NCBI GenBank assembly: GCA_002104945.1
Contig: MCFH01000032.1
Coordinates: 434,001 to 498,000 of the forward strand
DNA length: 64,000 bases
Direction of reading: 5' to 3'
Source of the DNA: Piromyces finnis finn
Taxonomy: Eukaryota > Fungi > Neocallimastigomycota
Part shown: positions 4,787 through 37,074 of the stretch, piece by piece
How the letters are laid out: every line of letters starts with the position of its first letter
Position numbering within the stretch: the stretch's first letter is position 1
Notes under the pieces: model-generated
Told to the model about the DNA's origin: nothing
Databases searched by the model: none
Seen by the model: only the letters and a program-made list of their open reading frames with translations
Made by a program: the position numbers and the translations under genes

Positions 4787-4792
4787 CAGTAA

Positions 4793-5400
4793 TGGTACAA
4801 CCTGTTTGTTTTGTTTGTACCTTTATATGGATCAATACAACTAGAATGAATAAAACAATTATTATATTATAATGAAATAACACAACAATAAAAATGATTT
4901 TTATATTTTATGTATTATTGTTTATATTCTTTTTATTTATCTTTGATCAATAATGTACTATTAATGATTTAAACTCTTATGATAGAAATAAACAAGTATA
5001 ATTCACTAGATTATAATCTGAATATCACTATTAATTCCTACTTAAATCTAATAATAATATTATTTATCTATCTAGTATTATCACTTATGCCTATTTTCTT
5101 ATTATTATTTCTTATTATCTTTTTATATCGTTCCCCCCCTTTTAATATTTATTAATTCTCTTTTATTAAATACTCTTTGTTGTAATTAAGGTTTTTAGTC
5201 TTTTTAATTAATTTTATTTATAATTTTTATTTTAGTTATTGCTATAAGCGTTATTAATTAAATCAATAATTGTTTGTTTATAAATTTATATATTAAATTT
5301 TTATTAAACCTAAAATACTTAAAGTAGAATTATTATTAGTAAATTTAAAGGTTAAATTGGAATTCCTATGCTCTTACATTTTTCTGAATCAGTCGTACCA
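4793..5400. mobile_element. Solo LTR (608 bp)
   Basis: Termini TGGTAC...GTACCA; 4-bp TSD GTAA at 4789-4792 and 5401-5404. Confidence 0.8.
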
Positions 5401-5404
5401 GTAA

Positions 5405-6192
5405 TGCTACGGTTCAAATAAGATATCACAAAACATTTGAATAGTTATAAAAATAAAAATTTATTTAATTTTAATTTTTATTCATTTAATTTATTTTTGA
5501 TCTTTCAATTTTTAAAATTTTTCTCAAAAATCCTCGTACTTTTTCCAACTATCCATTATTTGAAATTTAATGATTTTTGGATAGCTAAGGATTTAAATTG
5601 ATTTCATTCATAATATATGGATCATTCACTGTAACATATATTAATTAAATCCTTAATATATATTATGAATAATCTCTTAATATTTGAATAGAAAAATTTT
5701 TAATTTATAATTAATAAAATTTTAATATATTTTACATGTAACATTTTTTTCATATATTAACTAGTCAACTACATCCTATAATAAATTTATATTAGTTGAT
5801 TAATTATGTCCTTATTTAGCTATAAACAATAATTTTATGTCAAGGTATCTTCTGTTATTTGTGTAACAATTACCTTTTCTAGTAATTAAATTATAGCTCA
5901 TTTTCATTTAATAATCTTAATTTCTGAATATTATATAATAAAGTTAATTAATAAAATAAATCTTAATTAATAATAAAATATACAATCATTTTAATAATAA
6001 GAATTAAGTAAAATTTTATAAGAATAAAACATTATAATAAGACTAATATTAAAAGTAATGAAATAACTATATACAAATAATATAACTATATAATAAAATA
6101 TAATTAATTAATAAGAAAATGTATAAAAATTATTATATAATTTTATAATTCAAAAATAGAGTTAAACAGTAGTAAGGAATGTAAATAGTTCA
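5405..6192 (-). repeat. Partial B-family LTR
   Basis: Starts TGCTACGGTTCAAATAAGATATCAC like 20732 and 26907. Collinear with them up to AAATAGTTCA, where it is interrupted. Confidence 0.88.
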
Positions 6193-7038
6193 TGTTAAAT
6201 CACGCAGATTCGGGTTAGGTTTGGATTAATTAACTAGGTCTGGAATGGTTATAAACTAATAATAATAGAAACTAATTTCCTTAATTATCCGGTTATTGGA
6301 TGAAATTATATGCAATGGATTTATTAACTAAAATGACACTTTAATTTCAAATTTCATTAAAATAAAATTAAGTTTAAATCAACTTTTATTTATAAAATTA
6401 GTTACAAGGGAAATCTAATGTAATTTATTAATCTTTACTATTATTAATTTATCTAATTAAAATTAATAATCTTACTACTGATCAACATTTAACTAAACTA
6501 CTCTATTTATACTAATTTCACAAAGTTACAATTTCTACATAATTAATTCACATGGCTATTTTATTAATATTAATTAATTAATTTTTGTAACTATGATTTT
6601 TATAAACTGTCACGAGTAATAATAATTATTAATATAATATTTTATTATTTTAAGTCATGAGTTTAAATAACTTTTCACAACTTTTATCATCTGATTACTA
6701 ATTTAGAAATTAATAATTAAATTTATTATTAATAGTAATACTTAAACCAATACCTAAAAGTTTAGAAAATTTTTTATTAATTTTAAGTGTGAAATTTTTA
6801 ATATTTAATTTATATTGAATTCCCTTTAATTGGTCATAAGTAACTTAACCTTTTTGGAATATTGATGATTTAAATGTACCAAAAGATAGCTTAGGCCTTT
6901 AGCTTTCTAATGTTCATAATATCATCAAAGTAATTTAATTTTTCCAGTAATTATCTTAGGTTTCGTAATTCACACTTTATTTAAGGATTAGGTGTTTCAC
7001 ATCTATGGGATTATCTAAATCCACTTAGATTCGTGACA
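6193..7038. mobile_element. L-like LTR segment, possibly two pieces (6608-7038 has its own TGTCACGA...TCGTGACA termini)
   Basis: TG...CA flanked by GTTCA on both sides (6188-6192, 7039-7043). Carries the GGTCTGGAATG motif shared with L-like LTR ends. Confidence 0.6.
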
Positions 7039-7043
7039 GTTCA

Positions 7044-8021
7044 TGTTAAGTTTTTGGATTTGGTTATGCGGCCAGGTCAGAATGTTATCAATTATATAGT
7101 AAATATGTTTTTAAGAAATTAAATTTAAATATAAAATAACCCTTTAAACTTCCAAATGAAAAATTAATATTTATTCTTTAGAATAACTTTTTTTATAAAA
7201 TTTTATTTATTTATTAATAATAATATAAATGATAATATATTCAATAACTATATAATTAAGATTATAACTATAATCTTTACAAAGAATTAAAATCAAATTC
7301 AATTCATTCTATTTTATATTCTTTGTTCAGATTATTAAATTGATAAAAATAAAGTATTACATGTAATATATTAATAACATAATAAGATTGTTTGTTTGTT
7401 TGTTTGTTTGTTTTGTCATGACATAAAATAAAATAAACATATGATTAATCATTTAAACACTTGATCCATTAACCTATTTTATAATAATTAAAATTATTTA
7501 ATTTATAAATGTTAACTGTTACACCTAAATGGTTTAGTTCTATTTTTAGTAACAGTCACTATCATTAATTAAATTAATATAATTAAAATTTCTATTGATA
7601 TCTTTTTAATTTTCGTCAAGTCATAAGAAATGTCTATGATCCATACTTGATATCATATTGATTTTAATTTACTTATTAAAATCTTCAAATGACCATATCT
7701 TTCTTAAATGACCAGTTAGAAGGACCGCGATTGTACCAAAATATAGCTTTTTCCTTAAGCTTTCTAATAATCCCGGTTTCATAGCCGTAGTACTTATAGC
7801 CGTAGCGATCGTTTTTGGCAAGTTACGCGTAGTTTCGTATTTGTTTATTTTTGGCTAAGGGTTATAGTGTATTGATATTAAATTTTTGAAATCATAACCC
7901 TTTCACTGAATCAAAATTTAAAAGGTGACTGTTTTAAAATAATCATTGAAATTATTTAATTATAATTATTATGTTTAATTAATTATCTGAATTTGTTTTA
8001 AATCCAGTTAATATCTTCACA
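7044..8021 (-). mobile_element. L-family solo LTR (978 bp, internally shortened)
   Basis: TGTTAAGTTTTTGG...ATCTTCACA, homologous to 29063-30194; TSD GTTCA at 7039-7043 and 8022-8026. Confidence 0.92.
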
Positions 8022-8026
8022 GTTCA

Positions 8027-9245
8027 TGTAGAGTGGGCTAGGATTGGTATGTAACTTGGTCAGAATGTTTCATATAATATAACTTAATTTTCTAATAAAA
8101 TATTAAACTTATTTATTATTAAATATTTTCTTCAAAACTTATTAAAGAATTTAATTAATACTAATTTAAAATTAAATAGGTTTTTATATTTAAAATAAAA
8201 ATTTTAATATAATTTAATTATAAAATTCGTTTATTAATTATTTATTTATTAAGATAATATTTATTAAGTTATATTATAGTTAATAATTAATAATTAATAA
8301 TCTTACAAAGAATTTCAAAATTGATTTCAATTCTTTGTTTAAATACTTTTTTCTTACATATAATAAATTTACATTGATATTAATATTGATATTAATAATA
8401 AAGATAAAAATAAAATAATTTTAAATTAAAATATTAATAATTGATATTGATATTAATAATATGAATTCATATGATAGATCTTAAGATAATCTTTTAAATT
8501 ACTTTTAAAATAAAAGTATTGTTTAACCATTTTAAATTGTAAATATTTAATATTATAAATTGAGAATAACAATTACTGATACTAATTATATATTCTCATG
8601 ATCAATTAATTAATAATTATAACTAATGATTTTTGATCCAAAGGCTTTTTGGTTTGATTATGATTGAGGTTATTAATCAAAATTATTTGAAAAATTATTA
8701 ATTAATTTTTATAATTGATTAGGTTTATAATCAAGAATATTTATTATCTAACCTTATTTAATAATAATGGAGAATTTTTAAATTGAATTATTTATAGAAA
8801 GTTGGATGACTTGAATAATGACTTTAATTATATAAATTAATATTAATCATTTTAATATATATTATTATATATTTATTGGAACTAATTAATTCTTTAAATA
8901 GCTATATCTCAAGAACTAGTGGTCTAAATTAGCTGAAAATTTGTGAGAATATAGATCTCGACTAGTACTTTCTAATAAAATTAATTTGAAGTCTCTAGAA
9001 AAGGAAAATAGGACGCGAGATTCAGAAGTTATCACTAGTTTCGTATAGTGCATTTTCTTCTCAAGGGTTAATTTATTGAAAATTAAATTTTTGTGATCCT
9101 TAACCCTTTTCAATATTAAATTTTTCCAAGTGATATTTTTTAATTATTTTTAAAAGTGTTTTATAATTTTTGAAATATAAATTTGATTTTTAAATTGTTT
9201 ATTTGAATATTTAATTTATTTTTTAATCGTCTTCTATTCTTGACA
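8027..9245 (-). mobile_element. Diverged L-like LTR, probably recombinant
   Basis: TGTAGAG...TCTTGACA. Has the GGTCAGAATG motif and the AAGGGTTA..TAACCCTT inverted repeat as in L. Flanks differ (GTTCA vs ACACA). Confidence 0.65.
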
Positions 9246-9299
9246 ACACACTTTCTATAGTAAAATATAGAATTAAGATAATATTTTTCTATTGTATCA
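9246..9299. repeat. Terminal fragment of an E-type LTR
   Basis: CACTTTCTATA..TATAGAATTAAGATAATATTTTTC..GTATCA matches the end of 54527-55193. Confidence 0.7.
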
Positions 9300-9302
9300 T
9301 AA

Positions 9303-9889
9303 TGATACGTTATAAAATAAAATATCATAATATTATTATTTATTTTGAGGTTGTGGTAATAAGGAATATTGCTGAAATAATATATTCCAGTTATTAATAA
9401 TTATGCAATATAGTTATTATGTATTTATTTACTTATTTATTATTATTTGTTGTTATTATTATCATTATTATTATTATAAACAAAATAAGCCTTTTATTAT
9501 TATTAAATATTTATCTTTATTAAAATATATTATAATTAGTATTTTTACATTTATTTATTATTAATAATACATATTTAAAATAACTATCTTTCCTATATAA
9601 ATATACTACTTATTCACTATTAATATTACTAAACTATTACTAAATTTCTCATTTTATTATATCTTATTATCTTTGGAACTTAATTACAAAATCAAGAACA
9701 TTATTTTAATTTTTTAATTATTAATTATATTTATATTAGTACATATTAAATATTTTTTTTTTAATTAATTTCATATTAATTAATTTCATTATTAATTAAA
9801 GTTATTATTAATTTATTATTATCTTAACCCTTATATGAATCAACCTGGAATTTCTACCAAAAGTAGTATTTTCTGTTCGTCACGTATCA
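9303..9889. mobile_element. Solo LTR (587 bp), D-like termini
   Basis: TGATACG...CGTATCA. The 4-bp TSD ATAA is seen at 9299-9302, and at 9890 once later insertions are removed. Confidence 0.75.
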
Positions 9890-9892
9890 ATA

Positions 9893-10714
9893 TGTAGTAA
9901 TTTTATTATAATATTTAATATAAATATTATAATAAAATTACTTGTTGATAACTCAATATTAAAATTTAATATTAAATTATATGTATATGAAAAAAAAATT
10001 AAATATGAAATTAAAAAACTAGAACTTAACGAGTTTATTATAAGGATTTATAATAAACAACAAAAAACACAAATAGGAAGAGGGATGAGAATAAAATGGA
10101 TACTATAAGAATTATGTTTTATTAATAATATGATTTTTTTTATTAATTAATTTTTATTAAATAAAATTATTTGTTATTTATTATAATTAATTTTTCTTAT
10201 AATAATAACTCTTGAATTTTAAAGAATTTCAAGAGTGTTTATTTATATTTTTATTAAAAAATAAGGTTAAATAAATGAGTTCTAATCTTAACAAATAAAA
10301 TGTTTAGGAAAAGACTAGAAGAAAAACCTAAACAAGTTTTCAACCAATATTCTAATCATATTGGTTATCGTGTAAATTTTAAGTAAAACCAATTATTTGT
10401 AATAATAATCGGAAAAACCTTAAAATACCGATTTCCTAAAGTAAATCCGTGTTTAGATATAACAGGTAAATTAATTAGTAATATATAGTTTAAAGGGTAA
10501 AATTACGGATTCTTGTATATAAATATTATTTAAAAAATCAAATGAACAAATTATTATTTAATTAAATAAATTAAATAAATTATATAAATATATGAAATAT
10601 ATTTAACTAAATAAATTAAATAAATAATTTAAGTGTATAAAATATTATTAACTAAATTATTAAACTAATAAGAAATATTAATTATTTAGATTGAAATAAT
10701 TATTATTTCTTACA
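9893..10714 (-). mobile_element. G-family solo LTR (822 bp)
   Basis: Reverse-complement homolog of 4006-4786 (starts TGTAGTAATTTTATTA); TSD CAATA at 9888-9892 and 10715-10719. Confidence 0.85.
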
Positions 10715-10724
10715 CAATAAATAA

Positions 10725-11867
10725 TGTCACAATAACATATATAAAAATTTCAAATTATAAAATTTCTAATATTTGAAATTATTAAATTTTTTTTAAAATT
10801 ATTAAAATTTTATTATAAAAAATTTTATTTTAAATTTATTAACTATTTACAATAATTATATTAATTATTAATTTATAAAAATTAAATATTTTATAATTAG
10901 ACAATAATTAATTAAAATTAAAAAATGTAATAATTAAAATTGTTCATGTATAAAAAGAACAAAAATTGACAAAAATTACGAAGCTTTAGCGTTAGTAATT
11001 TTTTAACTTAAAGTTAATAAAATTTATAAACTCCTATAAAACCCAAATCTTTAAAAATTTTAATATTTTAATAACTTAATATATGCTGATATTAAGTTAT
11101 TGCTAAAATAAAAATATTATTTAATTTTCTTTATATAAATATTATTAGCTTTACGCCTTCAATAGGAAAGCGTATTATATTTGTTAATTAATATATGTCA
11201 AAGATTTCACTTCAGTTAGGTCGGAACGTACATATTTACCCTAAGTTTATCAATTAATTAAATAAATGAATTAGTAAATTTTTAAATAAATAATATTTTA
11301 TTAACTTTATTTATTAATAAATTTTTATTTAAAGAAAAATCTTTATTTATTAGTTATTATTATAATTAGAGTAAATATTAAATGTAATGAACTCTCGAAA
11401 TTCCTAATGATAGGAATTTTCTCGAGTATTTATACTATCTCTAATATTAAGGAATACATTTTAAATTTAATACATGACTAATTATTTATATTAATTAACT
11501 ATTCTATAAATTAATTATATATTAATTATATATGACTTTTCACTCGTGTTAAATTTAATAATTATAAAAGTCATATTATCAATCATTTATAGAAGGAATG
11601 ATTATTTCATAATTTAGTTTTAATTTCCTTCTTAATCAAATGAACAAAGAAATATTAATTCAAACTTTAATAAATATAAAATCTTAATACTTATAATTAA
11701 TTAATATTTCTTAAAATATTATAATTATGTTTTATAATAAAATATTTCTAATTAATTAAACGAATAAAACACTAATTAAATAAATAATCATGAATCCACT
11801 TATATTCATGACAATATAACTAGTGTGCTTACCACACTTTTCTTTAATAAAAAATCGCTTTTTGACA
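10725..11867 (+). mobile_element. A-family solo LTR, inverted relative to A, carrying a nested LTR
   Basis: Reverse complement of 13320-13941 (TGTCACAATAAC...GCTTTTTGACA). TSD AATAA at 10720-10724; the right copy is split between 11868 and 13315-13318. Confidence 0.9.
11196..11813. mobile_element. L-like solo LTR (618 bp) nested in the A-family solo LTR
   Basis: TGTCA...TGACA; TSD ATATA at 11191-11195 and 11814-11818. The host LTR rejoins cleanly; AGGTCGGAACG motif present. Confidence 0.88.
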
Positions 11868-11868
11868 A

Positions 11869-13309
11869 TGTAATAATTATTATCTTCAATTTAATAATAA
11901 TTAGTATTATTAAACTGAGAAGTTAAAATAAAATTTTATACTTATCTTAATAAGAGTTTATTATAAGGAAGTATAATAAACAACACAAAACTTTTAATGT
12001 TATTTAATTTAAAATATTTTATTAATATTGTTTTTTAATAAAGGTTATTTATTATAATAGTTCTTATAATAATAACTCTGGATTTTTAAGTGGAATTCCA
12101 GAGTTCTTTTATTTATAATTTTTTAATAATTTAAAGTTTAATAAAAAATTTCTAATCTTAACAAATAATCTTTTTAGGAAAAGAAGAAAAACCTAAAAAG
12201 ATATTCGATTGATAACTAATATATCAATCATCGTAATATTAAGTAAAACCGAATAAAATTCGGAAAAACCTTAATATCCGATTGTCCTAATATTTATTTA
12301 TATCTTCTAGTTGTTTCTATAAGTTATTTCAAGATACGATACATAAATATAAAATACAAACGTAAAATAAAATACATAATGTTTCTTATAAAATGTAATA
12401 CAAAAATTATTAAATAATAAAATAAATGAATGTTTACTATTATTTTAGATAAATTACTAAATTAAATAAATAATTAATTAATATAATAATTAAATAAATT
12501 TTACATTTAGTAAATGAATAATTAATATTAATATAAATAACTGTTTATAGTAATTTAAATGAATGTATGCTAATAATTTAAATAATTAATTAATTTAATA
12601 ATTAAAAAAATAATTAATGTCAAAATCACAATTCATGAAATTTGACATTTCATGAAATTTCATAATTTTGAATTAATAGTTAAATTAATTAAAATATTAA
12701 TTTAATAATATTTTACTAATAATAGTTTATTTAATATAAATATTAATTGGAAAGCTATTTATTATCCGGAGATAAATAGAGTGTAACAATTAATTAATAT
12801 TAAACAAACCAATTAGTAAAATAAGATTCATTTAAATAATTATTAATATTATTTTTAACAACTTATTAATATCGATATTTAAAGAAAATTATATTATTAT
12901 TACTATTATATTTTATTAATATTTATATTTATATTATTATACATGTATAACTTAAATTATATTATTATTATACTTTATTAATATCAACATTATATTAAAA
13001 ATGAAGTATAAATAAGTTGAACAAAGAACAACTTTAAGAAGTTCTTTGTGAGATTATTATACTCATTTTTATATAGTAAATTCAATATTTAAAATTAATA
13101 ATTATCATTTACTTATATTATAAAAATTAAATAAAATATTTCTTAAAAAACTATATTTATTACTCTTTTATTTATAAAAATTTATTATTTACTATATAAT
13201 TAAGCCTATCCTAACCTAGTAGACTTAATTATAATTCTAAATCCACTCTAACTCTTGACAATTAAATAAGAATTAATAATTATTCAATAAATAATTATTA
13301 ATTCTTACA
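11869..13309 (-). mobile_element. G-family solo LTR (about 793 bp net) carrying a nested LTR
   Basis: TGTAATAATT...ATTCTTACA with G-family motifs at 12070-12200; TSD GACAA at 11864-11868 and 13310-13314. Confidence 0.85.
12618..13260 (+). mobile_element. L-like solo LTR (643 bp) nested in the G-family solo LTR
   Basis: TGTCAA...TTGACA; TSD ATTAA at 12613-12617 and 13261-13265. TTCTTTGTGAGATTAT resembles the L motif TTCTTTGTAAAGATTAT. Confidence 0.8.
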
Positions 13310-14430
13310 GACAAATAAGTGTCAAAAAGCGATTTTTTATTAAAGAAAAGTGTGGTAAGCACACTAGTTATATTAATTAATAAATATAATACGCTTTCCT
13401 ATTGAAGGCGTAAAGCTAATAATATTTATATAAAGAAAATTAAATAATATTTTTATTTTAGCAATAACTTAATATCAGCATATATTAAGTTATTAAAAAT
13501 ATTAAAATTTTTAAAGTTTTAGGTTTTATAGGAGTTTATAAATTTTATTAACTTTAAGTTAAAAAATTACTAACGCTAAAGCTTCGTAATTTTTGTCAAT
13601 TTTTGTTCTTTTTATACATGAACAATTTTAATTATTACATTTTTTAATTTTAATTAATTATTATCTAATTATAAAATATTTAATTTTTATAAATTAATAA
13701 TTAATATAATTATTGTAAATAGTTAATAAATAAATTTAAATTAAAATTTTTAATAATAAAATTTTAATAATTTTAAAAAATTTAATAATTTCAAATATTA
13801 GAAATTTTATACTTTGAAATTTTTTAATAAAAATTTAAAAAATAAATTTTTTCAAATTTTCAAATTTTCAAATTTTGAAAAAATTTTTAATTTTTTCCAT
13901 GTGTCCAAATTTTTTAAATTTTTATATATGTTATTGTGACACTGCCCGTCCTAAGGGTCGTTTCGCCGGACGACCCAAAAAATTATGGACACTGGCACGT
14001 CATAATAATTTGGACATGGACACTTCCACGACACTAAGATTTTTTTTCAAAAATTGAGAATTTCCATTTTTTGAAAATTCTCAAAATTTTTCTAAGTGTT
14101 GAAAAAGTGAAGTGTAAAAGTGTTCAAGAAAAGTTGAGAGGGTATCACGTGGATTCTTCAGAAATGGAGACTACACGTGAAGGTTAGGGAAATGATATGA
14201 CTCGAGGGGAAGCGGATTTTGGGGTGCGGAAAAGGTTGCGAAATTTGAGGGTTGAGGGCAAAGGCGAAAGAGGGTGGTTGGGTAGCGGAATAGTGGTTGG
14301 TAGTTGTAGTGGTGGCGACTAGTGGGTAGCGGAGTTGTGGGTAGTAGGTGGGGTAGTGGCGATAGGTGGGTAGTGAAGGAGTAAGGGTGGTAGACACTAG
14401 TAGGTGGGGTACTAATAAGTGGGGTCCAGA

Positions 14431-19314: not shown

Positions 19315-19384
19315 TAAACTTTAATTATTATATTTAGTTATTAATAATTACTAACTAATTGGTGCTTAGCGCACTTTTATAATA

Positions 19385-19395
19385 AGCGTTAGTAA
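19385..19395 (-). promoter_or_regulatory. Self-priming PBS of element A
   Basis: TTACTAACGCT (minus strand) abuts the 5' LTR and is the exact complement of the LTR 11-mer at 19643-19653. Confidence 0.85.
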
Positions 19396-20019
19396 TGTCA
19401 AAAAGCGATTTTTTATTAAAGAAAAGTGTGGTAAGCACACTAGTTATATTAATTAATAAATATAATACGCTTTCCTATTGAAGGCGTAAAGCTAATAATA
19501 TTTATATAAAGAAAATTAAATAATATTTTTATTTTAGCAATAACTTAATATCAGCATATATTAAGTTATTAAAAATATTAAAATTTTTAAAGTTTTAGGT
19601 TTTATAGGAGTTTATAAATTTTATTAACTTTAAGTTAAAAAATTACTAACGCTAAAGCTTCGTAATTTTTGTCAATTTTTGTTCTTTTTATACATGAACA
19701 ATTTTAATTATTACATTTTTTAATTTTAATTAATTATTATCTAATTATAAAATATTTAATTTTTATAAATTAATAATTAATATAATTATTGTAAATAGTT
19801 AATAAATAAATTTAAATTAAAATTTTTAATAATAAAATTTTAATAATTTTAAAAAATTTAATAATTTCAAATATTAGAAATTTTATACTTTGAAATTTTT
19901 TAATAAAAATTTAAAAAATAAATTTTTTCAAATTTTCAAATTTTCAAATTTTGAAAAAATTTTTAATTTTTTCCATGTGTCCAAATTTTTTAAATTTTTA
20001 TATATGTTATTGTGACAAT

Positions 20020-26502: not shown

Positions 26503-26880
26503 GTTTTAAATAAAGATAAAAATACAATTTTACAATAATATTAAAGAATGAAACAAGTTTAAAAAAAAATAATTTTCTTTTATAAGAATTTAAAAGAATG
26601 AATTACAACAATATTTGAAATATATTTAATTAACAACACTAATAATTATTCTCTTTAGTTAAACTAGTAATACCAATATAAAATACTTCCTTAACTGCAC
26701 CAATTAACAATATTAATTTCTCTCTATTAACTATTTTAATTTGTGCCTTGAAGTATATAACTTTTTATTATACTAGTATAACCCTCTTTTGAATTATTAA
26801 CTATTTTAATTAAATAATAATACAAAAACAAATATAAAAGTAACTATAAAAATGTAGTGTGATATCAATATGTTATTATT

Positions 26881-26899
26881 ATCCCCGATATCTCCACCA
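26881..26899 (-). promoter_or_regulatory. PBS of B, complementary to the 3' end of a tRNA-Ala
   Basis: TGGTGGAGATATCGGGGAT. The implied tRNA end ..TATCTCC-A-CCA has U70 and A73, the Ala identity elements. Confidence 0.85.
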
Positions 26900-28019
26900 T
26901 TAATTATGCTACGGTTCAAATAAGATATCACAAAACACTTGAATAGTTATAAAAATAAAAATTTATTTAATTTTAATTTTTATTCATTTAATTTATTTTT
27001 GATTTTTCAATTTTTAAAAATTTTCTCAAAAATCCTCGTACTTTTTCCAACTATCCATTATTTGAAATTTAATGGTTTTGGATAGCTAAGGATTTAAATT
27101 GATTTCATTCATAATATATGGATCATTCACTGTAACATATATTAATTAAATCCTTAATATATATTATGAATAATCTCTTAATATTTGAATAGAAAAATTT
27201 TTAATTTATAATTAATAAAATTTTAATTTATGATATGTGTAACATTTTTGCATATCATATATTATATATTTAATTATGACATATAATAAAATTATATTAT
27301 TCAATTAATTATGCCCTTTTTTAGACATAAATAATAATTTTTCTGTCGAGGTATCTTCTGTTTTGTGTGTAACAGTTGCCTCTTTTAGTAAAAATTATAA
27401 TTAAATTCTATGTCATAATTTCAAATTATAAAATATTATACAATAAAGTTAATTAATAAAATAAACCTTAAATAATAATAAAATTCCTATAACTATTTTA
27501 ATAATAAAATTTTGTAAAATTTATAAGTATAAAATATTATAAGTAATTATACTAATACTAATAATAAAGGTCTTAAATAACTATATACAAATAATATAAC
27601 TATATAATAAAAATATTAATAATTACTAGAAAAATGTATAAAAATTATATATTATAATTTTTATATTTTAAAAATAGAGTTAAACACTAGTAAGGAATAT
27701 AAATAGTTGAAGGTTAATTGTTAAGTTTTTGGGTTTGGTTATGCGGCCAGGTCAGAATGTTATTAATTATATAGTAAAAATGTTTTTTAAGAAATTAAAT
27801 TTAATTATAAAATAACACCTTAAACTCCCAAATGAAAAATGAAAAATTTATATTTACTTTAAAATAACTTTTTATAAATTTTTTATTTATTTAATAATAA
27901 TATAAATGATATTATAAGTAACTATATAATTAAGATTATAACTATAATCTTTACAAAGAATTAAAATCGAATTCAATTCATTCTCTTTTATATTCTTTGT
28001 TCAGATTATTAAATTGATA

Positions 28020-29027
28020 TTAATAAGAATAAAGTATTACATATAATATATTAGTAATATAATTAAATAAGTAATAAGATTGTTTGTTTGTTTGTTTGTT
28101 GTATGATCTGTGGTGGTTGAAATGTGAATTTCTTTTCTTGTTAGATTTAGAGTTGGAAGACTGGTTAATCTTATTCTTTGTAGAAAGAGAACTTTCGATC
28201 AAAATACATCTAGTTATAATGGACTCCATGGTGGTTGGAAATACCTCCATCTTTTCAATTTCTTCCTGATATTTGGGATGTAAACCATTATAAAAGATTA
28301 AAGATAATGCTTCTTCATTCCATTTAAATTGTTGTGAAAGAGAGCGGAATTCCTCGATATAATCATTTATTTTACCATATTGTTGTTTTAAACGCATTAT
28401 TTTGATTTTAGCTATCTTGTAACTAGCAACATTTGAGAAAGCAATTCTTAGTCCATCCAACAATTCTTGCATGGTAGATGGATAAATATTATCCTTGTAC
28501 TTGGCAAGATACCAATTTCTAGCAGCATCACGAAGACGGGATTGTACAAAATTAATTTTTGTTTCTTCTGGTAAAGTTCGATTTGGTAGAGTTTTGAAAG
28601 TATCTTCACATAATTGACAAAACAAATCGGTATCACTAGTCTTACCGGAGAACATACCTGGATCTGGCACTTGAGTGATTGGAGTAGCAAAACGGCCTCT
28701 CATGATAACATCATGATCCAAATCAAATCTTGTTGAAGTAGATTCATCATCTCTAAAGACAGTAGGTCTTGGAGTAGCTATCCTATCATAATTGGTATGT
28801 AACAATGGTTGTTCATCTTCATTCTGAGCAGTTTGATTATTATTCATATTGGTTAATACACTCATGATTTCATTTAAACGATTATTCACATCATTGGAAA
28901 AATTTTGAAAATCTTCACGGAAAACCAAATTTTCATTGATACCCTCAATGATATCCTTGGCAGTCTGAGTAGCATCCTCTCTTAGTTGGTTTACCTCGTC
29001 TGGGAAATTAGGAACCGGAGTGAACAT
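28020..29027 (-). CDS. gag: Element L Gag (335-aa ORF; residues encoded below about 28099 are read-through into LTR)
   Basis: Retrotransposon Gag pattern: PGMFSG..KINFVQSRLRDAARNWY..KINDYIEEFR..YNGL. Confidence 0.88.
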   Translation of the reverse strand: MFTPVPNFPDEVNQLREDATQTAKDIIEGINENLVFREDFQNFSNDVNNRLNEIMSVLTNMNNNQTAQNEDEQPLLHTNYDRIATPRPTVFRDDESTSTRFDLDHDVIMRGRFATPITQVPDPGMFSGKTSDTDLFCQLCEDTFKTLPNRTLPEETKINFVQSRLRDAARNWYLAKYKDNIYPSTMQELLDGLRIAFSNVASYKIAKIKIMRLKQQYGKINDYIEEFRSLSQQFKWNEEALSLIFYNGLHPKYQEEIEKMEVFPTTMESIITRCILIESSLSTKNKINQSSNSKSNKKRNSHFNHHRSYNKQTNKQSYYLFNYITNILYVILYSY

Positions 29028-29051
29028 TCTAAAGTAGCCACTAAACAGCGG

Positions 29052-29062
29052 GTAAAGATTAT
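29052..29062 (-). promoter_or_regulatory. Self-priming PBS of L
   Basis: ATAATCTTTAC abuts the LTR and is the exact complement of LTR 29288-29298. A TATAAAA (minus strand) lies about 32-38 nt upstream of that 11-mer. Confidence 0.85.
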
Positions 29063-30749
29063 TGTTAAGTTTTTGGGTTTGGTTATGCGGCCAGGTCAGA
29101 ATGTTATTAATTATATAGTAAAAATGTTTTTTAAGAAATTAAATTTAATTATAAAATAACACCTTAAACTCCCAAATGAAAAATGAAAAATTTATATTTA
29201 CTTTAAAATAACTTTTTATAAATTTTTTATTTATTTAATAATAATATAAATGATATTATAAGTAACTATATAATTAAGATTATAACTATAATCTTTACAA
29301 AGAATTAAAATCGAATTCAATTCATTCTCTTTTATATTCTTTGTTCAGATTATTAAATTGATATTAATAAGAATAAAGTATTACATATAATATATTAGTA
29401 ATATAATTAAATAAGTAATAAGATTGTTTGTTTGTTTGTTTGTTTGTTTGTCATGACATAAAATAAAATAAACATATGATTAATCATTTAAACAGTTGAT
29501 CCTAATTAGTAATTATAAAAACTATTCAATTAATAATTCATCATTATTAATTGATATTACCATAACATATTTGTTATAACTAAATAATTATTATTTTCAA
29601 AATTATTTCTAATAAAACTTGCCGTTAACCTATTTTATAATAATTAAGATTATTTAATTTATAGGTATTAACTGTTACACCTAAATGGGTCTAGTTCTAT
29701 TTTTAGTAACAATCGTTATCATTAATTAAATTAATATAACTAAAATTCCTATTGATATATTTTTAATTTCATCAAGTCATAAGAAATATTTATGATCCAT
29801 ACTTGATATCATATTGATTTTAATTTACCTAATAAAATCTTTAAATGATCATAACTTCCTTAAATGATCAGTTAGAAGGACCGCGATTGTACCAAATTGT
29901 AGCTTTCTTCCTAAGCTTTCCAATAAACCTAGTTTCACAGCCTACTACTTACAGCCGTAGCGATCGTTTTTGGCGAGTTACACCTTATTTCGTACTTGCT
30001 TATTTTTGGTTAAGGGTTATAGTATATTGATATTAAATTTTTGAAATCATAACCCTTTCACTGAATCAAAATTTAAAAGGTGACTTTTAAAAGTGTTTTA
30101 AAATAATTATTGAAATTATTTAATTATAATTATTATGTTTAATTAATTATAGATATTATCTGAATTTGTTTTAAATCCAGTTAATATCTTCACATTAATT
30201 CCTAAAATTCTAGCTAATTCAACTATTTATGTTCATTCCTTAACAACAATAAGTGTAAGAAATATTTGTGGCCATAAGTTTGACCACAAATATTTCAATT
30301 GAAACCATATATTCTGGTCACCATTTATTGGCCAAATATATGCATAACCATATATTAATGGTTATTAATTAAATAGGAAGTTTATTTGCTTTACCCAATC
30401 AAGTGGTAAAGAAAATAAACTCATATAGTTAAATAGTATAGTTAAAACTAACGTTAAATACTTTAGCGTTAGTATTAAAGTAAATTAATAACTATAATAA
30501 TAATTAATGTAGATAATTATAATTAATAAATAAAAGATATAATTAAAATATAATTATTTAAGTAAAAGTTATTTCATAAAATATTTATATAAGTGTTTAT
30601 ATTTATTTTAGTGTTATAATATTTATTTTCCTTCTTTTATTATTTTTTATAAAACTTTATTTAGTTATTAACTCGTATAGAGAGGTAATAACTAACTTAA
30701 TTAACTAATTTAATAACCTATTAACTAATATTATAATAAACCTTTTACA

Positions 30750-30760
30750 ATACTAACGCT
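30750..30760 (+). promoter_or_regulatory. Self-priming PBS of C
   Basis: ATACTAACGCT abuts the LTR and is the exact complement of AGCGTTAGTAT at 30465-30475. Confidence 0.85.
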
Positions 30761-31050
30761 TTATAGTTAGTTCTTACGTTAGCTTAGTTTTAATTAGGTT
30801 AGTGTTATTAAAAATTCTTAAAAAACATATTTTATTTTATTTAAATTATTGTTTAATAATAATTATTTACAATATTTTATATAATATCCAAATATTATAT
30901 TTAAAAGAAGTAAATTTATTATTAAAAATAATTATTTTTTAATAGTTTAGCATTAAAAATTCATTATTTTTAAATTTTAAAATTCATTATAACCATATTT
31001 TATATAATAAATTCTTTAATTTATTAAAAGAATTTATTTTCGAATTAGAA

Positions 31051-34000
31051 ATGAAAAACGCAGGTAAGTCGCCTAACCCTCGGGGTGTCCATAAATTGGA
31101 CACAAAAACATCATTCGTAAGGGACGGGACCCGTCCTGACGCGGCGAGCGCGGATGGCATGGATGGTGTAGAGGGAATGTCACGGGTTCGAACCCCGGTG
31201 CTTCTCGAAAGCACTGAGGTCGAATCTAATCAGAATTTACAGGTTCAACAGGGGGATTCTATGCCCGCCCCTGTTGATCCTTCTTTCTTTTTTACTAATA
31301 ATAGTGAGGTAAACCCAATGCAACACATTGAAGTTCTTCTTAATAGATGGGTTTCGGAAATATCTAGCCAGTTTGCTAGTATGGGAAACCGTCTGGGTGC
31401 TATGGAAGAACAACTGCGGGGTATTGAGGTTTACAAGAGCGAGATAAACGATGCTCTTCAGCAAAAATTTGTTGAAGTGGATCAAAGGTTGGAAGCAAAT
31501 GAGTCAGCTAGCCAAGTTAGCTTGGAAGAGCTGCATGCTGTGGAAAATGCCTTTACCGCAGAACATGAGGAAAGGTTACAAGACCACCAGCAAGTGCTAA
31601 ACAACCAAGAAACGTTGTACCGTCAATCTAGTGCCTTTGTCTCTTATAAAAAAGAGCTTGAAGAAGAGATGGCCAGATTGAGGGAGCAACGAAACGCTCT
31701 AGAAGAAAGAGAAAAATTGTTCGAGGCTAAAGTCGAAGCCATGAACAGAAGAGCTGAAGCCAGAGCTCATGAAAGAACATCCTATCAAACCGGTGGTACG
31801 GGTAATCCTCATGGTGCTGGAACTAGTAGCAGCACCAACCCTACGGAATACTCCGAGGATGGGGACGTGAAGATGTTCGACTGGCGAGTACATAGGTATG
31901 AAGAAAAAGTGCCTATGTTTGATAATAATGGGATAGACTTAGAGGGTTTTCAAGAGAAGTGCTTACGTCATTTCAAACGTTATCCATATGACTATGGTAA
32001 CGACGAAAAGGCAAAGGTTAGCTTCATTGAAGATCATCTAGGTGGGAAAGTATTGAGATGGTATAGACTTAGAGAGAGGATGCTGCAGCGTAGGAATCCT
32101 GATGCTGAAAGACTATTCCTCCACCTTCAAGATAAGTTTCCACCAGAGTCTCCCCATGAACTCTGCAAGTCAAAGTTGCTTAAACTCACACATGAGTGGG
32201 GAAAAGCATACGACTACTTGGAAGAGTTCAATGAATTGACGGAAACACTTGGGCTTCCTGAAAATGTTAGGAGACAGGTGTTAATACAACAGGTCAGGCC
32301 TTCTGTCAGGGAAGCGTTCTATGATATCCCTGAACAGGAACGTACGCTGGAAACATTAAGTGAAGTCTTGTTAAAGTGCGATGATCACCAAGCAGTCTTC
32401 CGTAATGAAACCATAGAAAAGTACGACAAAAGAGACCGCCAGACCACTATTATGGCCTTGTTGGACATCACAGACCCATGTAGACCATCTAGATGGGCTG
32501 AGTTAAAGCAGAAGAACAACAAGCCAAATAATAAGCCTAAAGTTGAGCAGACCAACACTCAGGCTTACGCAAAAAACAATAACGGTATTAAAGAACGTCG
32601 CGAATCATTAAACAAGTCAAGCTTTAGAAGAAGTTCTAGCTTCCAACCAAGGCAAGGACCTTCTAGTATGGGAAATAACCCATTACCTAAGGCTATGGCA
32701 AGTCAAACGACGGTTAATAACAGCTACTACAGTCAGAACCAATTAGTAGCTGAAATAAATGCAAGAAGCAACCCTCGAGATATAAAAAGGGTAGAAGTCT
32801 TGTATGATACTGGTTCCACTACAAACCTCATTCACCCAAATTTGGCAAAGAAGCTCGGGTTAAAGGTAGTGGACAAACCAGCCATATTCAGAACTGTGAA
32901 TGGAGATATCGAGTTAAAGCAGTTCTCAGATGACTTGCAGTTGAAGTTATGGTTAACTCCATCTGGCGAACAAGAAGCTAAACCATACTGCTTCAACACA
33001 AGTTGTCACCTATCCGACAACATGCCGGAGACGATCATTGTGGGACTGGGCTTCATGGATGAGCACTTTATCTACAGAGGTTACGATAAAGATGCACAAG
33101 TGAGGTACTTCGTAGTTGATAATGATAAGGATAAAGGACATACCAACAGTTATGGTGTGAATGGTGGTGACATCTACTACTGTACTCAATTAAGTCCCAT
33201 AAATACAGTTACTAATGCAAAAGCAAGAAGGCCTCTGGTAACTGTAACCGCAGAAAACATTGAAGCCGAAATCGTGGGCAATGGTAGCCACAAGGCTACA
33301 AAAGAAACCAGAAACGGAAGTTCCGGAGGGTTGGCATCGAGTTCCAACTTAGAGAAAACTTGTGTTTCAGTAGGGTTGGTACAGAGTGTTGACTTAGAGA
33401 AAAAATGTGATTCCGGAGGGTTGACATTTGAATCCAACTTAGAAAAAACTTGTGTTTCAGTAGGGTTGGTACAAGAGTCGAACTTAGAGAAAAATCACAT
33501 TTACGTAGGGTTGGTACAGGGAGAAAACTTAAACGAAAATCAACCCACACCTGAAGAAATCGTGGAGAAGTACTACCACAATTTCAAAGAAGCATTTAAT
33601 GAAGAAATAGCTAACCAGCTACCAGAACACCGTCCTTACGACTGTAAGATCGACCTGGAGCCGGATGCTAGTCTTCATAAAGGGCCTATATATCCCTTCA
33701 ATCCAGAAGAGGAAAAAGCACTGAAGGAATATATAGAGGAAAACCTGGCAAAGGGCTTCATCAGGAAGTCAGAGAGTCCTGCAGGTTATCCTGTGTTATT
33801 CGTGCCCAAAAAGAGTGGTGAAAGACGATTATGTACTGATTATAGGCGTCTTAATAAGGTAACAGTGCGTAACTCCTTTCCCTTACCACTCATCAGTCAA
33901 GTGTTTGAGGCTATGAAAGGCGCGACTATCTTCTCCAAGTTGGATTTGAAGTCTGCCTACAACCTCGTGCGTATTCGTGAAGGTGACGAATACAAGACGG

Positions 34001-36546
34001 CATTCTCAACCAAGTTTGGGCATTATGAATATCTAGTGATGCCATTTGGGTTGACTAATGCTCCTGCCACGTTCCAAGGGTTCATTAATACGGTGCTGGC
34101 AGAGGAAATCAATGATTGCTGTCAAGTGTACTTGGATGATATCATCATCTACTCCAAGTCACTTGAAGAGCATGTAGGGCATGTAAAAAGAGTCCTACAA
34201 AAGCTAATAGATAATCGTCTAGTAGCTAAGTTGGCGAAGTGTGAGTTCCACAAGGAAGAACTTGCATTCCTGGGTCATGTAGTTGGAAAATATGGTATTA
34301 AAACCGACCCAGAAAAGTTAAAAGCTGTAGCAAGTTGGCCACAACCAACCAACATTAAAGAACTACAGTCATTCCTTGGATTCTGCAACTATTATAGGAA
34401 GTTTATAAAGGACTTCTCTAAGATAGCAAGGCCGTTATATGCTATGACGTCCAAAAAGGTACAGTTCCTGTGGAATGAAGAACGCATCCAGGCGTTCGAG
34501 AAGTTAAAAGAAATGCTGTTGTCTCCACCAGTATTAGCATATCCTGACCATGACCGTCAGTTCATAGTGGAGTGCGACGCTAGTAACTACGCGGTGGGCG
34601 GTGTACTATCACAACTAGGCGATGACAATGAACTACACCCTGTGTATTACTATTCCAAGAAGCTTACGAAAGCAGAAATCAACTACTCCATCACGGAAAA
34701 GGAGTTGTTGGCTATTAGGAATGCTTTCATCGAGTGGCGACACCTGTTAATGGGTGCGAAACATAAGGTCCTAGTATATAGTGACCATAGGAATCTCCTG
34801 TTCGCCACAAAACCACAGTTGTTGACAACAAGACAGGCAAGATGGCAAGAGCTGTTTGCTGCATACAACTTCGAAATAATATATCGGCCAGGGAAAATGA
34901 ATGGTAGAGCCGATATCCTATCAAGAATGGTATCTCCAGAACAGGTACAACTGGAGATGGAAAAAGCTAGCCTCCTTCGACCTGAACAGGTAAAAGAATT
35001 TCCATCCGTGGAAGAAGAGTGCTATGCGATGTTAGAAGTAAGCTTTGTGGGAGAACTGAAACAAGCTTACAACACGGATGAGCTTGCTAGGGAAATTAGA
35101 GATGGTCTTGACGTAAAACGAGGCCACAAGCTCATCAAAAAGAAGTGGTTGATGGTTAATGGGTTGATTGTTAGAAAGGATGCACCAGAACGTACATATG
35201 TACCAAAGGTGTTAAGGGAAACAATCATAAAACTTAATCACGATAGTGAAACAGCAGGTCATCTGGGAAAAGATAAAACTTATGACCTGATAGCCAGAAA
35301 CTACTACTGGCCAAAAATGAAGGATGACATTGCGGGATATATTAAAGCTTGTACCACATGTTGTACCCAAAAGGACAACAGACACAAGCCGTACGGTAGC
35401 GCTGCTAGGGTAAAAGTTGCAGACTTACCTTGGCAAGAAGTAGAAATTGACTTCCTGACGGACTTACCTATTAAGGAACGTAGAAAACCAGGTAGTAGTC
35501 CCTCAGAACCCCCAGAAGTCACTAGAAGAGGTTGTATCATGGTTTGTAGCGATAAGTTAACCAAGATGATACACTTAGTGGGATTTAGGAGTATGCCTAC
35601 TGCTAAAGAGACAGCCTTAGCATACTTACAACATGTATTCAAGTTACATGGTTGTCCCAAATCGGTTACTACGGATCGTGGTGTCCAGTTCACTAGTAAG
35701 TTGTGGAAGGACATTATGGGGTTCTTTGGCGTAGAAGTAAACCTTGCTACTACTGACCATCATGAAACAGTTGGTCAGGTGGAACGTAACAACTCCTACG
35801 TAAGTATGTACCTTAGATGCTTTGTGAAGACCTTTGATGACGACGAATGGTTGAAGTACTTGTACTTAGCTGAGTTCTGTTATAATAATACAGTGCACAG
35901 TTCTACTAAGCAGCCCCCATTCCTAGCCTTGTATAACTACCAGGTACATATGAACCCTCAAGACTCAGAACTTGTCCACTCACTTGGTGAAGCTCCTATA
36001 TTAGATAGCTTCGCTCACAACTTAGGTAACTTAAAGCACATGTTGGACATATCAAGAACACGGTTCTTAGACCATTTGGACCATAGAAGAGAACTTAACT
36101 ACCCTAAAATTAGGCTCCTGGATTTGGTGTGGTTAAGAAAACCAGAAAATTACAACCCTCTTCCCTTCTACAAGCTACAAGCAAGAAAGTACGGTCCCTT
36201 CAAGGTTATTGGAATTGATGAAAGCAAGCTCAACTACCGGTTAGATATCAGCAAGTCACCTTTCCCCAATGTCTACCCTGTGTTTCATATCAGTGAACTT
36301 GAACCCTACCATAACAAACCTGAAGAACTAACACCTGCACCAGTGGGCTACCAGAAAATTATCAAAATCATGAATGCCAGAAGAAAGAAGGATAACTACC
36401 AATACTTAGCTACCTTTAGTGACTTTAGACAAGAGTGGGTTGATGCCGATATCATTGACAAGAACTCCCACTATGATAAGCTACTCAAGGAATTTCAAGA
36501 TAAATGCTACCAGGAATTCATGGTTAGTGTCCAAAACCCTGCCTAG
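31051..36546 (+). CDS. gag-pol: Element C Gag-Pol polyprotein, 1831 aa
   Basis: LYDTGST, YLDD, ECDASN, HDSETAGH..CTTC, DRGVQF and GPF motifs; degenerate chromodomain KIMNARR..YQYLATF..EW. Confidence 0.97.
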   Translation: MKNAGKSPNPRGVHKLDTKTSFVRDGTRPDAASADGMDGVEGMSRVRTPVLLESTEVESNQNLQVQQGDSMPAPVDPSFFFTNNSEVNPMQHIEVLLNRWVSEISSQFASMGNRLGAMEEQLRGIEVYKSEINDALQQKFVEVDQRLEANESASQVSLEELHAVENAFTAEHEERLQDHQQVLNNQETLYRQSSAFVSYKKELEEEMARLREQRNALEEREKLFEAKVEAMNRRAEARAHERTSYQTGGTGNPHGAGTSSSTNPTEYSEDGDVKMFDWRVHRYEEKVPMFDNNGIDLEGFQEKCLRHFKRYPYDYGNDEKAKVSFIEDHLGGKVLRWYRLRERMLQRRNPDAERLFLHLQDKFPPESPHELCKSKLLKLTHEWGKAYDYLEEFNELTETLGLPENVRRQVLIQQVRPSVREAFYDIPEQERTLETLSEVLLKCDDHQAVFRNETIEKYDKRDRQTTIMALLDITDPCRPSRWAELKQKNNKPNNKPKVEQTNTQAYAKNNNGIKERRESLNKSSFRRSSSFQPRQGPSSMGNNPLPKAMASQTTVNNSYYSQNQLVAEINARSNPRDIKRVEVLYDTGSTTNLIHPNLAKKLGLKVVDKPAIFRTVNGDIELKQFSDDLQLKLWLTPSGEQEAKPYCFNTSCHLSDNMPETIIVGLGFMDEHFIYRGYDKDAQVRYFVVDNDKDKGHTNSYGVNGGDIYYCTQLSPINTVTNAKARRPLVTVTAENIEAEIVGNGSHKATKETRNGSSGGLASSSNLEKTCVSVGLVQSVDLEKKCDSGGLTFESNLEKTCVSVGLVQESNLEKNHIYVGLVQGENLNENQPTPEEIVEKYYHNFKEAFNEEIANQLPEHRPYDCKIDLEPDASLHKGPIYPFNPEEEKALKEYIEENLAKGFIRKSESPAGYPVLFVPKKSGERRLCTDYRRLNKVTVRNSFPLPLISQVFEAMKGATIFSKLDLKSAYNLVRIREGDEYKTAFSTKFGHYEYLVMPFGLTNAPATFQGFINTVLAEEINDCCQVYLDDIIIYSKSLEEHVGHVKRVLQKLIDNRLVAKLAKCEFHKEELAFLGHVVGKYGIKTDPEKLKAVASWPQPTNIKELQSFLGFCNYYRKFIKDFSKIARPLYAMTSKKVQFLWNEERIQAFEKLKEMLLSPPVLAYPDHDRQFIVECDASNYAVGGVLSQLGDDNELHPVYYYSKKLTKAEINYSITEKELLAIRNAFIEWRHLLMGAKHKVLVYSDHRNLLFATKPQLLTTRQARWQELFAAYNFEIIYRPGKMNGRADILSRMVSPEQVQLEMEKASLLRPEQVKEFPSVEEECYAMLEVSFVGELKQAYNTDELAREIRDGLDVKRGHKLIKKKWLMVNGLIVRKDAPERTYVPKVLRETIIKLNHDSETAGHLGKDKTYDLIARNYYWPKMKDDIAGYIKACTTCCTQKDNRHKPYGSAARVKVADLPWQEVEIDFLTDLPIKERRKPGSSPSEPPEVTRRGCIMVCSDKLTKMIHLVGFRSMPTAKETALAYLQHVFKLHGCPKSVTTDRGVQFTSKLWKDIMGFFGVEVNLATTDHHETVGQVERNNSYVSMYLRCFVKTFDDDEWLKYLYLAEFCYNNTVHSSTKQPPFLALYNYQVHMNPQDSELVHSLGEAPILDSFAHNLGNLKHMLDISRTRFLDHLDHRRELNYPKIRLLDLVWLRKPENYNPLPFYKLQARKYGPFKVIGIDESKLNYRLDISKSPFPNVYPVFHISELEPYHNKPEELTPAPVGYQKIIKIMNARRKKDNYQYLATFSDFRQEWVDADIIDKNSHYDKLLKEFQDKCYQEFMVSVQNPA

Positions 36547-37074
36547 GTTTTCTCCTTAGGGGGGCAGTGTAAGAAATATTTGTGGCCATAAGTTTGACCA
36601 CAAATATTTCAATTGAAACCATATATTCTGGTCACCATTTATTGGCCAAATATATGCATAACCATATATTAATGGTTATTAATTAAATAGGAAGTTTATT
36701 TGCTTTACCCAATCAAGTGGTAAAGAAAATAAACTCATATAGTTAAATAGTATAGTTAAAACTAACGTTAAATACTTTAGCGTTAGTATTAAAGTAAATT
36801 AATAACTATAATAATAATTAATGTAGATAATTATAATTAATAAATAAAAGATATAATTAAAATATAATTATTTAAGTAAAAGTTATTTCATAAAATATTT
36901 ATATAAGTGTTTATATTTATTTTAGTGTTATAATATTTATTTTCCTTCTTTTATTATTTTTTATAAAACTTTATTTAGTTATTAACTCGTATAGAGAGGT
37001 AATAACTAACTTAATTAACTAATTTAATAACCTATTAACTAATATTATAATAAACCTTTTACAATAAGTGAGTA

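Follow-up and report, generated by a model that had tools for sequence, protein, structure and literature searches.

A layered pile of LTR retrotransposons upstream of a tRNA-Ser gene in an anaerobic gut fungus, and two insertion windows measured from the tRNA

Upstream of a tRNA-Ser(GCT) gene of the anaerobic gut fungus Piromyces finnis lies a pile of retrotransposons with long terminal repeats (LTRs), which we read, with a probability of about 0.85, as a layered record of at least 17 insertions aimed at this one RNA polymerase III (Pol III) gene by way of a tethered integrase. The window analysed here (the whole stretch of 64,000 nucleotides, positions 434,001 to 498,000 of contig MCFH01000032.1) is very AT-rich, contains few genes and consists nearly entirely of retroelement-derived DNA, and it was compared with the 56.46-Mb assembly of 232 contigs. 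The pile has a clear anatomy, in which a chain of target-site duplications (TSDs) links the layers, two insertion windows are measured from the tRNA irrespective of tRNA identity, one of the two is locked in orientation, and cassettes with A and B boxes are used as well. The features are listed in Table 1.

Layers next to the tRNA gene and their order

The chain of TSDs was followed with a script that deleted each element together with one TSD copy, newest first, and demanded matching flanks at each stage; LTR pairs and further copies in the genome, not the TSDs, had served to fix the LTR ends. A sequence-only reading of this DNA had proposed that positions 4787-37074 collapse in this way, and the script reproduced the collapse, leaving a 17-nt site, CAGTAAATAAGTGAGTA, that adjoins tRNA-Ser. 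The TSDs of these layers span -17 to -7 from the mature 5' end of tRNA-Ser, which we call the first window, and several of them include the final 1-4 nt of the preceding LTR, as had been noticed before and as is expected if the newcomer cuts beside that LTR. Eleven TSDs had been claimed; nine are exact at the given positions relative to tRNA +1 at the time of insertion, whereas the other two, assigned to the truncated element G1 and to a "B-type/E-type composite", did not stand. Neither the window nor the adjacent 4 kb on its left contains a 5' LTR for G1, and CAGTA, previously taken as its TSD at -17 to -13, is therefore only its right flank and no demonstrated TSD, while the outer flanks of the composite (5405-9299) match on 3 nt only (TAA). 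A control with random TG..CA pairs from the same region gave matches of at least 5 nt in 0.29% of the trials and of at least 4 nt in 1.0%, and even if each junction is granted 25 boundary choices, the joint chance bound comes to 7e-14. Chance chains of TSDs, which had been named as a possible refutation, are thus rare, and coincidence is excluded.

Since a first-window newcomer lands between the tRNA and its predecessor, the order from left to right is the order of arrival, and this serial insertion, which had already been suggested, explains every junction. An insertion into the second window, described below, is dated between its host layer and the next layer, because it is nested in the former. 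The oldest layers are, in this order, G1, solo LTR 4793, the B-type LTR (with X, E-type and U8027), the D-type tail, and solo LTRs 9303 and 9893, and they were followed by the A-solo LTR (with 11196), solo LTR 11869, A, the S-solo LTR, B (with E-del) and C. The order had to be taken from geometry: with identities of 99.9-100% between the paired LTRs of A, B, E and C (B 99.9%, the other three 100% by self-BLAST), divergence cannot rank these layers. Divergence matches the order in trend only: the four proximal elements are intact and their LTRs identical, and the distal layers are solo LTRs, truncated or recombined. The readable timeline that had been announced for this locus thus holds as far as the order is concerned, but one layer boundary has been erased by recombination.

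G1 is the oldest readable layer; it has tblastn matches to the pol regions of G, A and C and shares 74% amino acid identity with ORF2 (open reading frame 2) of G. Beyond it, another Ty3/gypsy pol is seen on the strand of G1 at window coordinates -3479 to -600 (L128), 45% identical to A and 60% to G. The pile therefore extends leftward past position 4787, where it had been thought to begin. The A-solo LTR is inverted relative to element A and split by the nested solo LTR 11196-11813, and the S-solo LTR is 97-98% identical to an LTR at 62244-63071 (self-BLAST).

Table 1. Features of the pile and of further loci; TSD positions refer to the mature 5' end of tRNA-Ser at the time of insertion (RT, reverse transcriptase).
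Feature	Position	Strand	Details
G1, 5'-truncated G-like Ty3/gypsy	1192..4786	+	RT 1192-1867, integrase ORF 2611-3996, 3' LTR 4005-4786
Leftmost surviving target letters CAGTAA	4787..4792		residue after collapse
Solo LTR TGGTACAA..TCGTACCA	4793..5400		TSD GTAA 4789-4792 + 5401-5404, -15..-12
B-type solo LTR	5405..6192	-	88% identical to B LTR; last ~54 nt gone; cut at GTTCA 6188-6192
X, second-window solo LTR TGTTAAAT..TCGTGACA	6193..7038		TSD GTTCA
E-type, second-window solo LTR	7044..8021	-	88% identical to E LTR; TSD GTTCA
U8027, second-window LTR, end ..TTCTTGACA	8027..9245		flanks GTTCA left, ACACA right
F/D-type first-window LTR tail, 54 nt, ..TTGTATCA	9246..9299	+	head lost; end lay at -15
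Solo LTR TGATACGT..ACGTATCA	9303..9889		TSD ATAA -15..-12; 97.6% identical copy in locus L014
Solo LTR TGTAGTAA..TTCTTACA	9893..10714		TSD CAATA -17..-13
A-solo LTR	10725..11867	+	TSD AATAA -12..-8; 97% identical to A LTR
Second-window solo LTR TGTCAAAG..TCATGACA	11196..11813		nested in A-solo; TSD ATATA -66..-62
Solo LTR 11869, TGTAATAA..TTCTTACA	11869..13309		1441 bp; TSD GACAA -16..-12
A, intact Ty3/gypsy	13320..20017	-	622-bp LTRs 100% identical; one 1627-aa gag-pol ORF; TSD ATAAG -11..-7, right copy now divided AT + AAG
S-solo LTR TGTTACGG..CCTTAACA	20020..20727	-	TSD CAAT -13..-10
B, intact Ty3/gypsy	20732..30245	-	TSD ACAAT -14..-10; true LTR length 858 bp (20732-21589), 813 bp in repeat search; right LTR 26907-27718 + 30200-30245, interrupted by E-del 46 nt from LTR end
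E-del, second-window element	27719..30194	-	1132-bp LTR, gag, last 382 bp of other LTR; TSD TTAAT
C, intact Ty3/gypsy, newest layer	30254..37063	+	496-bp LTRs 100% identical; one 1831-aa ORF; TSD ATAAG 30249-30253 + 37064-37068, -11..-7
Remaining upstream flank, 11 nt, ATAAGTGAGTA	37064..37074	+	adjoins tRNA-Ser
Target tRNA-Ser(GCT)/tRNA-Met(CAT) pair	37075..37240	+	tRNA-Ser 37075-37156, tRNA-Met 37166-37240; 9-nt spacer; ARAGORN
tRNA-like cassette loci L065, L100, L105, L109, L115	contigs C1, C192, C205, C24, C35		flanks of C copies
Paralogous tRNA-Arg loci with C (L078-L081)	C176:84607-85102, C176:119365-119859		

The elements are of the Ty3/gypsy type: in A, B, C, F and also E, Pfam finds the order protease, RT, RNase H, integrase, G likewise belongs to Ty3/gypsy by Pfam, the best solved relative is Ty3 Gag-Pol, and the LTRs are direct, with TG..CA ends and 4-5-bp TSDs. 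In pol, A and C are 57% identical, E is about 40% identical to A and C and 55% to G (RT region), and B and F are 46% identical, whereas the A/C/G/E and B/F groups share 32-34%. By these identities there are two deep Ty3/gypsy lineages, which both contribute insertions in the window, in agreement with the multi-lineage stack that had been described. The same division is seen in the priming sites. A, C, E and G contain, inside the LTR, an exact 11-12-nt complement of the bases that directly follow the 5' LTR (offset 0), the self-priming signature of the Tf1 type; in B and F no such complement was found, and a tRNA primer site of the TGGTGGAG type is present. The integrases of A, C and E continue for about 70 residues beyond the SH3-like domain, at which those of G, B and F stop, and A, C, E and G carry an SH3_Tf2-1 domain. 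In the structure model of the C integrase tail (mean predicted local distance difference test score 78, about 90 in the tail), an SH3-like barrel is followed by three strands and a helix, and the top Foldseek matches are the Ty3 integrase chains of 7q5b (E 5.5e-3), followed by many chromodomains with template modelling scores of 0.72-0.81.

A second window and the genome-wide distances

The sequence-only reading had placed all insertions in the 17-nt site. At least five, however, used a second window further upstream, with TSDs at -68 to -61 from tRNA-Ser, inside the LTR that was proximal at that time: E-del, solo LTR 11196-11813, X, E-type and U8027. Together with 12 first-window insertions, these 5-6 second-window insertions make up the total of at least 17. 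E-del sits in the tRNA-proximal LTR of B, whose end at -15 puts the TSD TTAAT at -65 to -61. The site ATATA that was used by solo LTR 11196-11813 in a reversed A LTR carries an E LTR in another reversed A LTR at locus L027. In about 17 cases, the tRNA-side ends of second-window LTRs lie at -65 to -68 with a mode of -67, and the copies have one orientation relative to the tRNA throughout, with the 5' end of the element facing the gene. The sequence hit at this position varies, being a B LTR, a reversed A LTR, a reversed C LTR, an F LTR or, in one case, an unassigned flank, and the tails of 46-55 nt sum with first-window LTR ends at -12 to -17 to a constant distance from the tRNA. As the distance is constant and the host sequence variable, the ruler starts at the tRNA and not at the LTR end; measurement from the LTR end was ruled out by this constancy and by the one locus without a recognisable LTR.

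The composite had been taken as one layer. It is the recombined remnant of at least two layers and no single insertion, and contains the B-type solo LTR, X, E-type, U8027 and the 54-nt LTR tail. The LTRs X, E-type and U8027 are spaced by the identical pentamer GTTCA, and one 5-nt target was therefore reused; the X family also ends at -65 to -68 at other tRNAs, and a 97.5% identical copy of U8027 lies within a reversed C LTR at locus L019, 55 nt from the LTR end. That X and E-type are a single long LTR was ruled out, as different LTR ends and TSDs precede E-type at other loci. Since the flanks of U8027 do not match, we infer that it arose when two copies in successive layers recombined, and the simplest reading is that this event deleted the intervening DNA and thereby erased a layer boundary.

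In E-del, a 5-kb internal deletion joins gag to the final 382 bp of the LTR. A spreading gag-only element was considered and ruled out, as the deletion junction is found in the window copy alone, and at least 16 other genomic copies end at the junction. At least 16 copies show 100% identity across the internal 960 bp, full-length copies measure about 7.5 kb (the places concerned include contigs C208, C176, C135 and C112 and C159:547-554 kb), and the family is therefore very recent. The E family is autonomous; at least 29 genomic copies of its internal region exist, and according to Pfam a full-length E neighbour, L129, codes for domains of RT, RNase H, integrase and SH3_Tf2-1.

For a tRNA-centred test, the 60 best-scoring tRNA matches were taken with 3 kb upstream, of which 46 loci remained after removal of near-duplicates. 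The first genes at these loci are Arg, Thr, Glu and Gly, and distances were taken from the first gene because many matches were the second gene of Glu-Arg or Gly-Thr pairs. Repeat-alignment ends cluster at -7 to -19 and at -60 to -68, with about five loci per position over a background of 0.57 per position (maximum 4). BLAST boundaries occupy most of the sampled tRNA genes: the first window is used at 31 loci, the second at 23, both at 17 and neither at 9. At two of these nine, a decayed upstream tRNA displaces the reference point, and an LTR-like end is visible by eye at some of the loci that lack a BLAST boundary in the first window. Closely paired tRNA genes are frequent (Ser-Met with a 9-nt spacer, Glu-Arg with 9-10 nt, Gly-Thr with 3-8 nt; the window and loci L001-L060), and the upstream tRNA-Glu is decayed or partly deleted at loci L008-L010 and L022.

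The newest family was also followed from the element side. Besides the two LTRs in the window, at least 39 copies of the C LTR are 94-100% identical, at least 20 of them at about 100%, and 150 nt beyond each LTR end were fetched, which gave about 25 distinct insertions. In 11-12 of these, a tRNA gene (Trp, Arg, Ser, Glu or Met) starts 11-13 nt from the LTR end, always pointing away from the element, which itself occurs in either orientation. In five further C insertions, a tRNA-like cassette with A box, B box and T-run follows at a distance of about 14-19 nt. Most of the remaining flanks belong to stacks, another LTR end being no more than 9 nt away, and a few are unassigned. Sharp peaks were thus obtained with both the 46 loci and the C insertions in the genome-wide comparison of LTR-to-tRNA distances that had been proposed as a check. 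The family offsets differ, with C at -12 or -13, B/S at -14 to -17, where the proximal end is always the 5' one, and G-type at -16 to -19, so that proximal LTR ends range from -12 to -19 overall.

The cassette is a repeated sequence of about 70 nt with an A-box-like TTAGTGGTTAG, a B-box-like AGTTCGAGACC and a T-run; neither ARAGORN nor Rfam made a call in the cassette flanks. In four cassette loci with readable flanks or LTR offset, C has the TSD AATAC or its complement GTATT. At two paralogous tRNA-Arg loci, a C solo LTR occupies the same AAAAT target between the same outer flanks in opposite orientations, through either independent use of one pentamer or inversion.

Further insertions surround other tRNA genes of the window. 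Three more elements lie to the right of the tRNA-Ser/tRNA-Met pair (self-BLAST). An intact copia element with a 1681-aa ORF on the minus strand and 99.7% identical LTRs occupies 37279-43207, with the TSD ACTAA (37274-37278 and 43208-43212) 34-38 nt past the 3' end of tRNA-Met; related copia LTRs begin 75-88 nt past tRNAs at L032, L015 and L049 and about 33 nt beyond the T-run of the tRNA-like cassette at L065 and L115. Copia copies downstream of tRNAs may be a loose third target class. At tRNA-Gly(GCC) (45261-45331, minus strand, ARAGORN), a mirror stack extends over 45332-54527, in which element F begins at 45346, at a distance of 14 nt upstream of the tRNA, and has the 4-bp TSD TATT, and the 5' LTR of F is interrupted by an E solo LTR (45398-46528, TSD AAAAA) that ends at -67. 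This stack shows the same two windows on the opposite strand.

A probable tether and the alternatives to it

How the pile arose can be outlined as follows. Both Ty3/gypsy lineages cut with a 4-5-bp stagger at -17 to -7, and each newcomer in this first window pushes the older layers outward from the tRNA. A second set of families (E, X, U8027 and the 11196 type) inserts in one orientation and in a tighter window, with the LTR end at -65 to -68, which in a stack falls about 50 nt inside the LTR that is proximal at that moment, and LTR-LTR recombination reduced most of the old layers to solo LTRs and probably merged two layers. By analogy with Ty3, Tj1 and DGLT-A, the integrases are probably tethered to the Pol III initiation complex, and it may be TFIIIC/TFIIIB-Pol III on the A/B-box promoter that holds them and serves as the ruler; we also infer the positions of the windows relative to the transcription start. 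As solved for Ty3, the ruler there consists of the integrase C-terminal domain and a vestigial chromodomain, which contact TBP and Brf1 (PMC8632968). A, C and E have the same predicted layout, an SH3-like C-terminal domain with a divergent chromodomain-like tail, which may contribute. B and F, which lack the tail, would need another contact, and there must be more than one molecular solution, given that tail-less lineages share the window. Some 50-55 bp further upstream, the second window could mark the far edge of the complex or that of a neighbouring nucleosome. We regard it as fairly probable that Pol III genes of anaerobic gut fungi are subject to a two-ruler system, with a window at the presumed start site that is common to unrelated lineages, with and without the chromodomain-like tail, and a tighter, orientation-locked window at -65 to -68. 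The initiation complex would then offer two separate docking surfaces, and related integrases (E versus G, A and C, 40-55% identity) would have switched between them.

Several findings speak against targeting in this form. Three TSDs in the chain have 4 instead of 5 bp (CAAT, ATAA, GTAA), and the composite junction and G1 have no verifiable TSD. The fold matches of the C tail are weak, with all Foldseek E values above 1e-3, and the Pfam Chromo domain is below threshold in A (E 0.06) and has no match in C or E. B, F and G use the first window without a chromodomain-like tail, and the tail therefore cannot be a general ruler. The tRNA sample consists of the best-scoring tRNA matches only. Finally, no LTR was found within 110 nt upstream of five scored 5S rRNA genes (L130-L134), and targeting of all Pol III genes is thus unsupported; the upstream sequences of these five are identical and three of the genes are spaced 8,534 bp apart, and their emptiness may reflect array homogenisation or a need for A/B-box promoters.

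The rival that we take most seriously, while still considering it unlikely, accepts the targeting and replaces the protein tether by DNA or chromatin shape, such as DNA bending where TFIIIB sits or the border of a positioned upstream nucleosome, with -67 as the edge of a nucleosome or bend. Ty1 reads nucleosomes and would be the model. The spacing of about 50-55 bp between the windows could match the edge of a complex, and the use of the first window by B, F and G without the tail would fit as well; however, nucleosome-guided Ty1 patterns are much broader than these peaks, the sequence that is hit differs freely from one LTR to another, and the orientation lock of the second-window families suggests an asymmetric protein contact. 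It is highly unlikely that insertion was unaimed and that selection spared only copies in harmless DNA flanking tRNA genes. Retroelement havens of this kind occur in many genomes, and the window, gene-poor and retroelement-derived as it is, has the look of one, but selection cannot yield a precision of 11-13 nt at five kinds of tRNA for near-identical recent copies, nor a second peak about 4 nt wide at -65 to -68, nor the reuse of an identical 5-nt target.

The pattern might also have been copied, a few tRNA-LTR junctions having been multiplied by segmental duplication, by gene conversion from one stack to another or by misassembled repeats. Near-duplicates of other loci do make up 14 of the 60 tRNA loci, many of them on small contigs, and the succession of X and E-type is seen again at another locus. 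The peaks persist after de-duplication, however, and the TSDs at the junctions vary between loci, as do the kinds of tRNA, the orientations (both occur) and the outer flanks, and misassembly would not give a self-consistent nested chain of TSDs; we consider copying extremely unlikely. We therefore keep to the reading that integrases were aimed at the tRNA gene through a tether.

Significance and comparison with known systems

Targeting of tRNA genes is the textbook example of a safe landing choice and has been described in budding yeast, in one fission yeast and in social amoebae. Our analysis extends it to a fungal lineage that diverged early; here elements occupy the majority of the sampled tRNA genes, with several lineages in competition for the same few bases, and a second exact insertion window comes to light. 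That related integrases differ in their windows and unrelated ones share a window amounts to a natural experiment on how distance is measured from the Pol III complex, the stacks provide an internal order of family activity, and the site-specific integrases could become tools for fungi that lack genetic tools.

The closest parallel is Ty3 (Saccharomyces cerevisiae, Metaviridae), which inserts about 15 bp before the mature tRNA 5' end (PMC5006619). Like the elements described here, it is a Ty3/gypsy element, and it has a 5-bp TSD; its window is a few bp wide and lies at the Pol III start, and the predicted C integrase tail is best matched by Ty3 integrase chains. In contrast to Ty3, at least two deep lineages, one of them without the tail, share the first window here, the proximal LTR ends are spread over -12 to -19 with offsets that depend on the family, and most of the sampled tRNA genes are occupied. 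Ty3 also enters 5S and U6 genes, whereas the scored 5S genes are empty here, and the elements of the pile have no sequence similarity to Ty3 beyond the common pol domains.

Tj1 of Schizosaccharomyces japonicus, a Tf1-related element, inserts 5-11 bp before mature tRNA 5' ends (PMC4600332) and is likewise a fungal Ty3/gypsy element in front of tRNAs. A, C, E and G resemble it in the Tf1-type self-priming signature and the SH3_Tf2-1 domain, a likeness drawn from these features and not from a tree. In contrast to Tj1, the 5' end of B/S adjoins the tRNA here, so that transcription runs away from the tRNA, and C occurs in both orientations.

DGLT-A of dictyostelid amoebae is found 13-33 bp (mean 15) before tRNA genes, with many copies being solo LTRs, and is regarded as convergent with Ty3 (PMC5006619). 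The location upstream of tRNA genes and also the many solo LTRs are shared with the present pile, but DGLT-A has no chromodomain, no described second LTR window and about 20 mostly dead copies in D. discoideum, whereas the families here are of recent date, with at least 20 C LTRs at about 100% identity. A second discrete window further upstream is known from TRE5-A and its relatives in Dictyostelium; these TRE5 elements insert about 50 bp upstream of tRNA genes in a fixed relation to the gene (PMC5006619). They are, however, non-LTR elements that use target-primed reverse transcription, whereas the -67 window is used here by integrase-bearing Ty3/gypsy elements, the pol of E having RT, RNase H and integrase domains by Pfam.

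In the literature on retrotransposons and Neocallimastigomycota or Neocallimastix, we found no report of tRNA targeting, although search coverage was incomplete and this is no proof of absence; these fungi are not mentioned in a 2018 review on targeting of Pol III genes, and no description of an LTR retrotransposon window at -65 to -68 was found in the literature searched. In comparison with these systems, the first window represents a new host lineage for a known strategy, and what is new is that a second window is driven by integrase and that unrelated lineages share one window.

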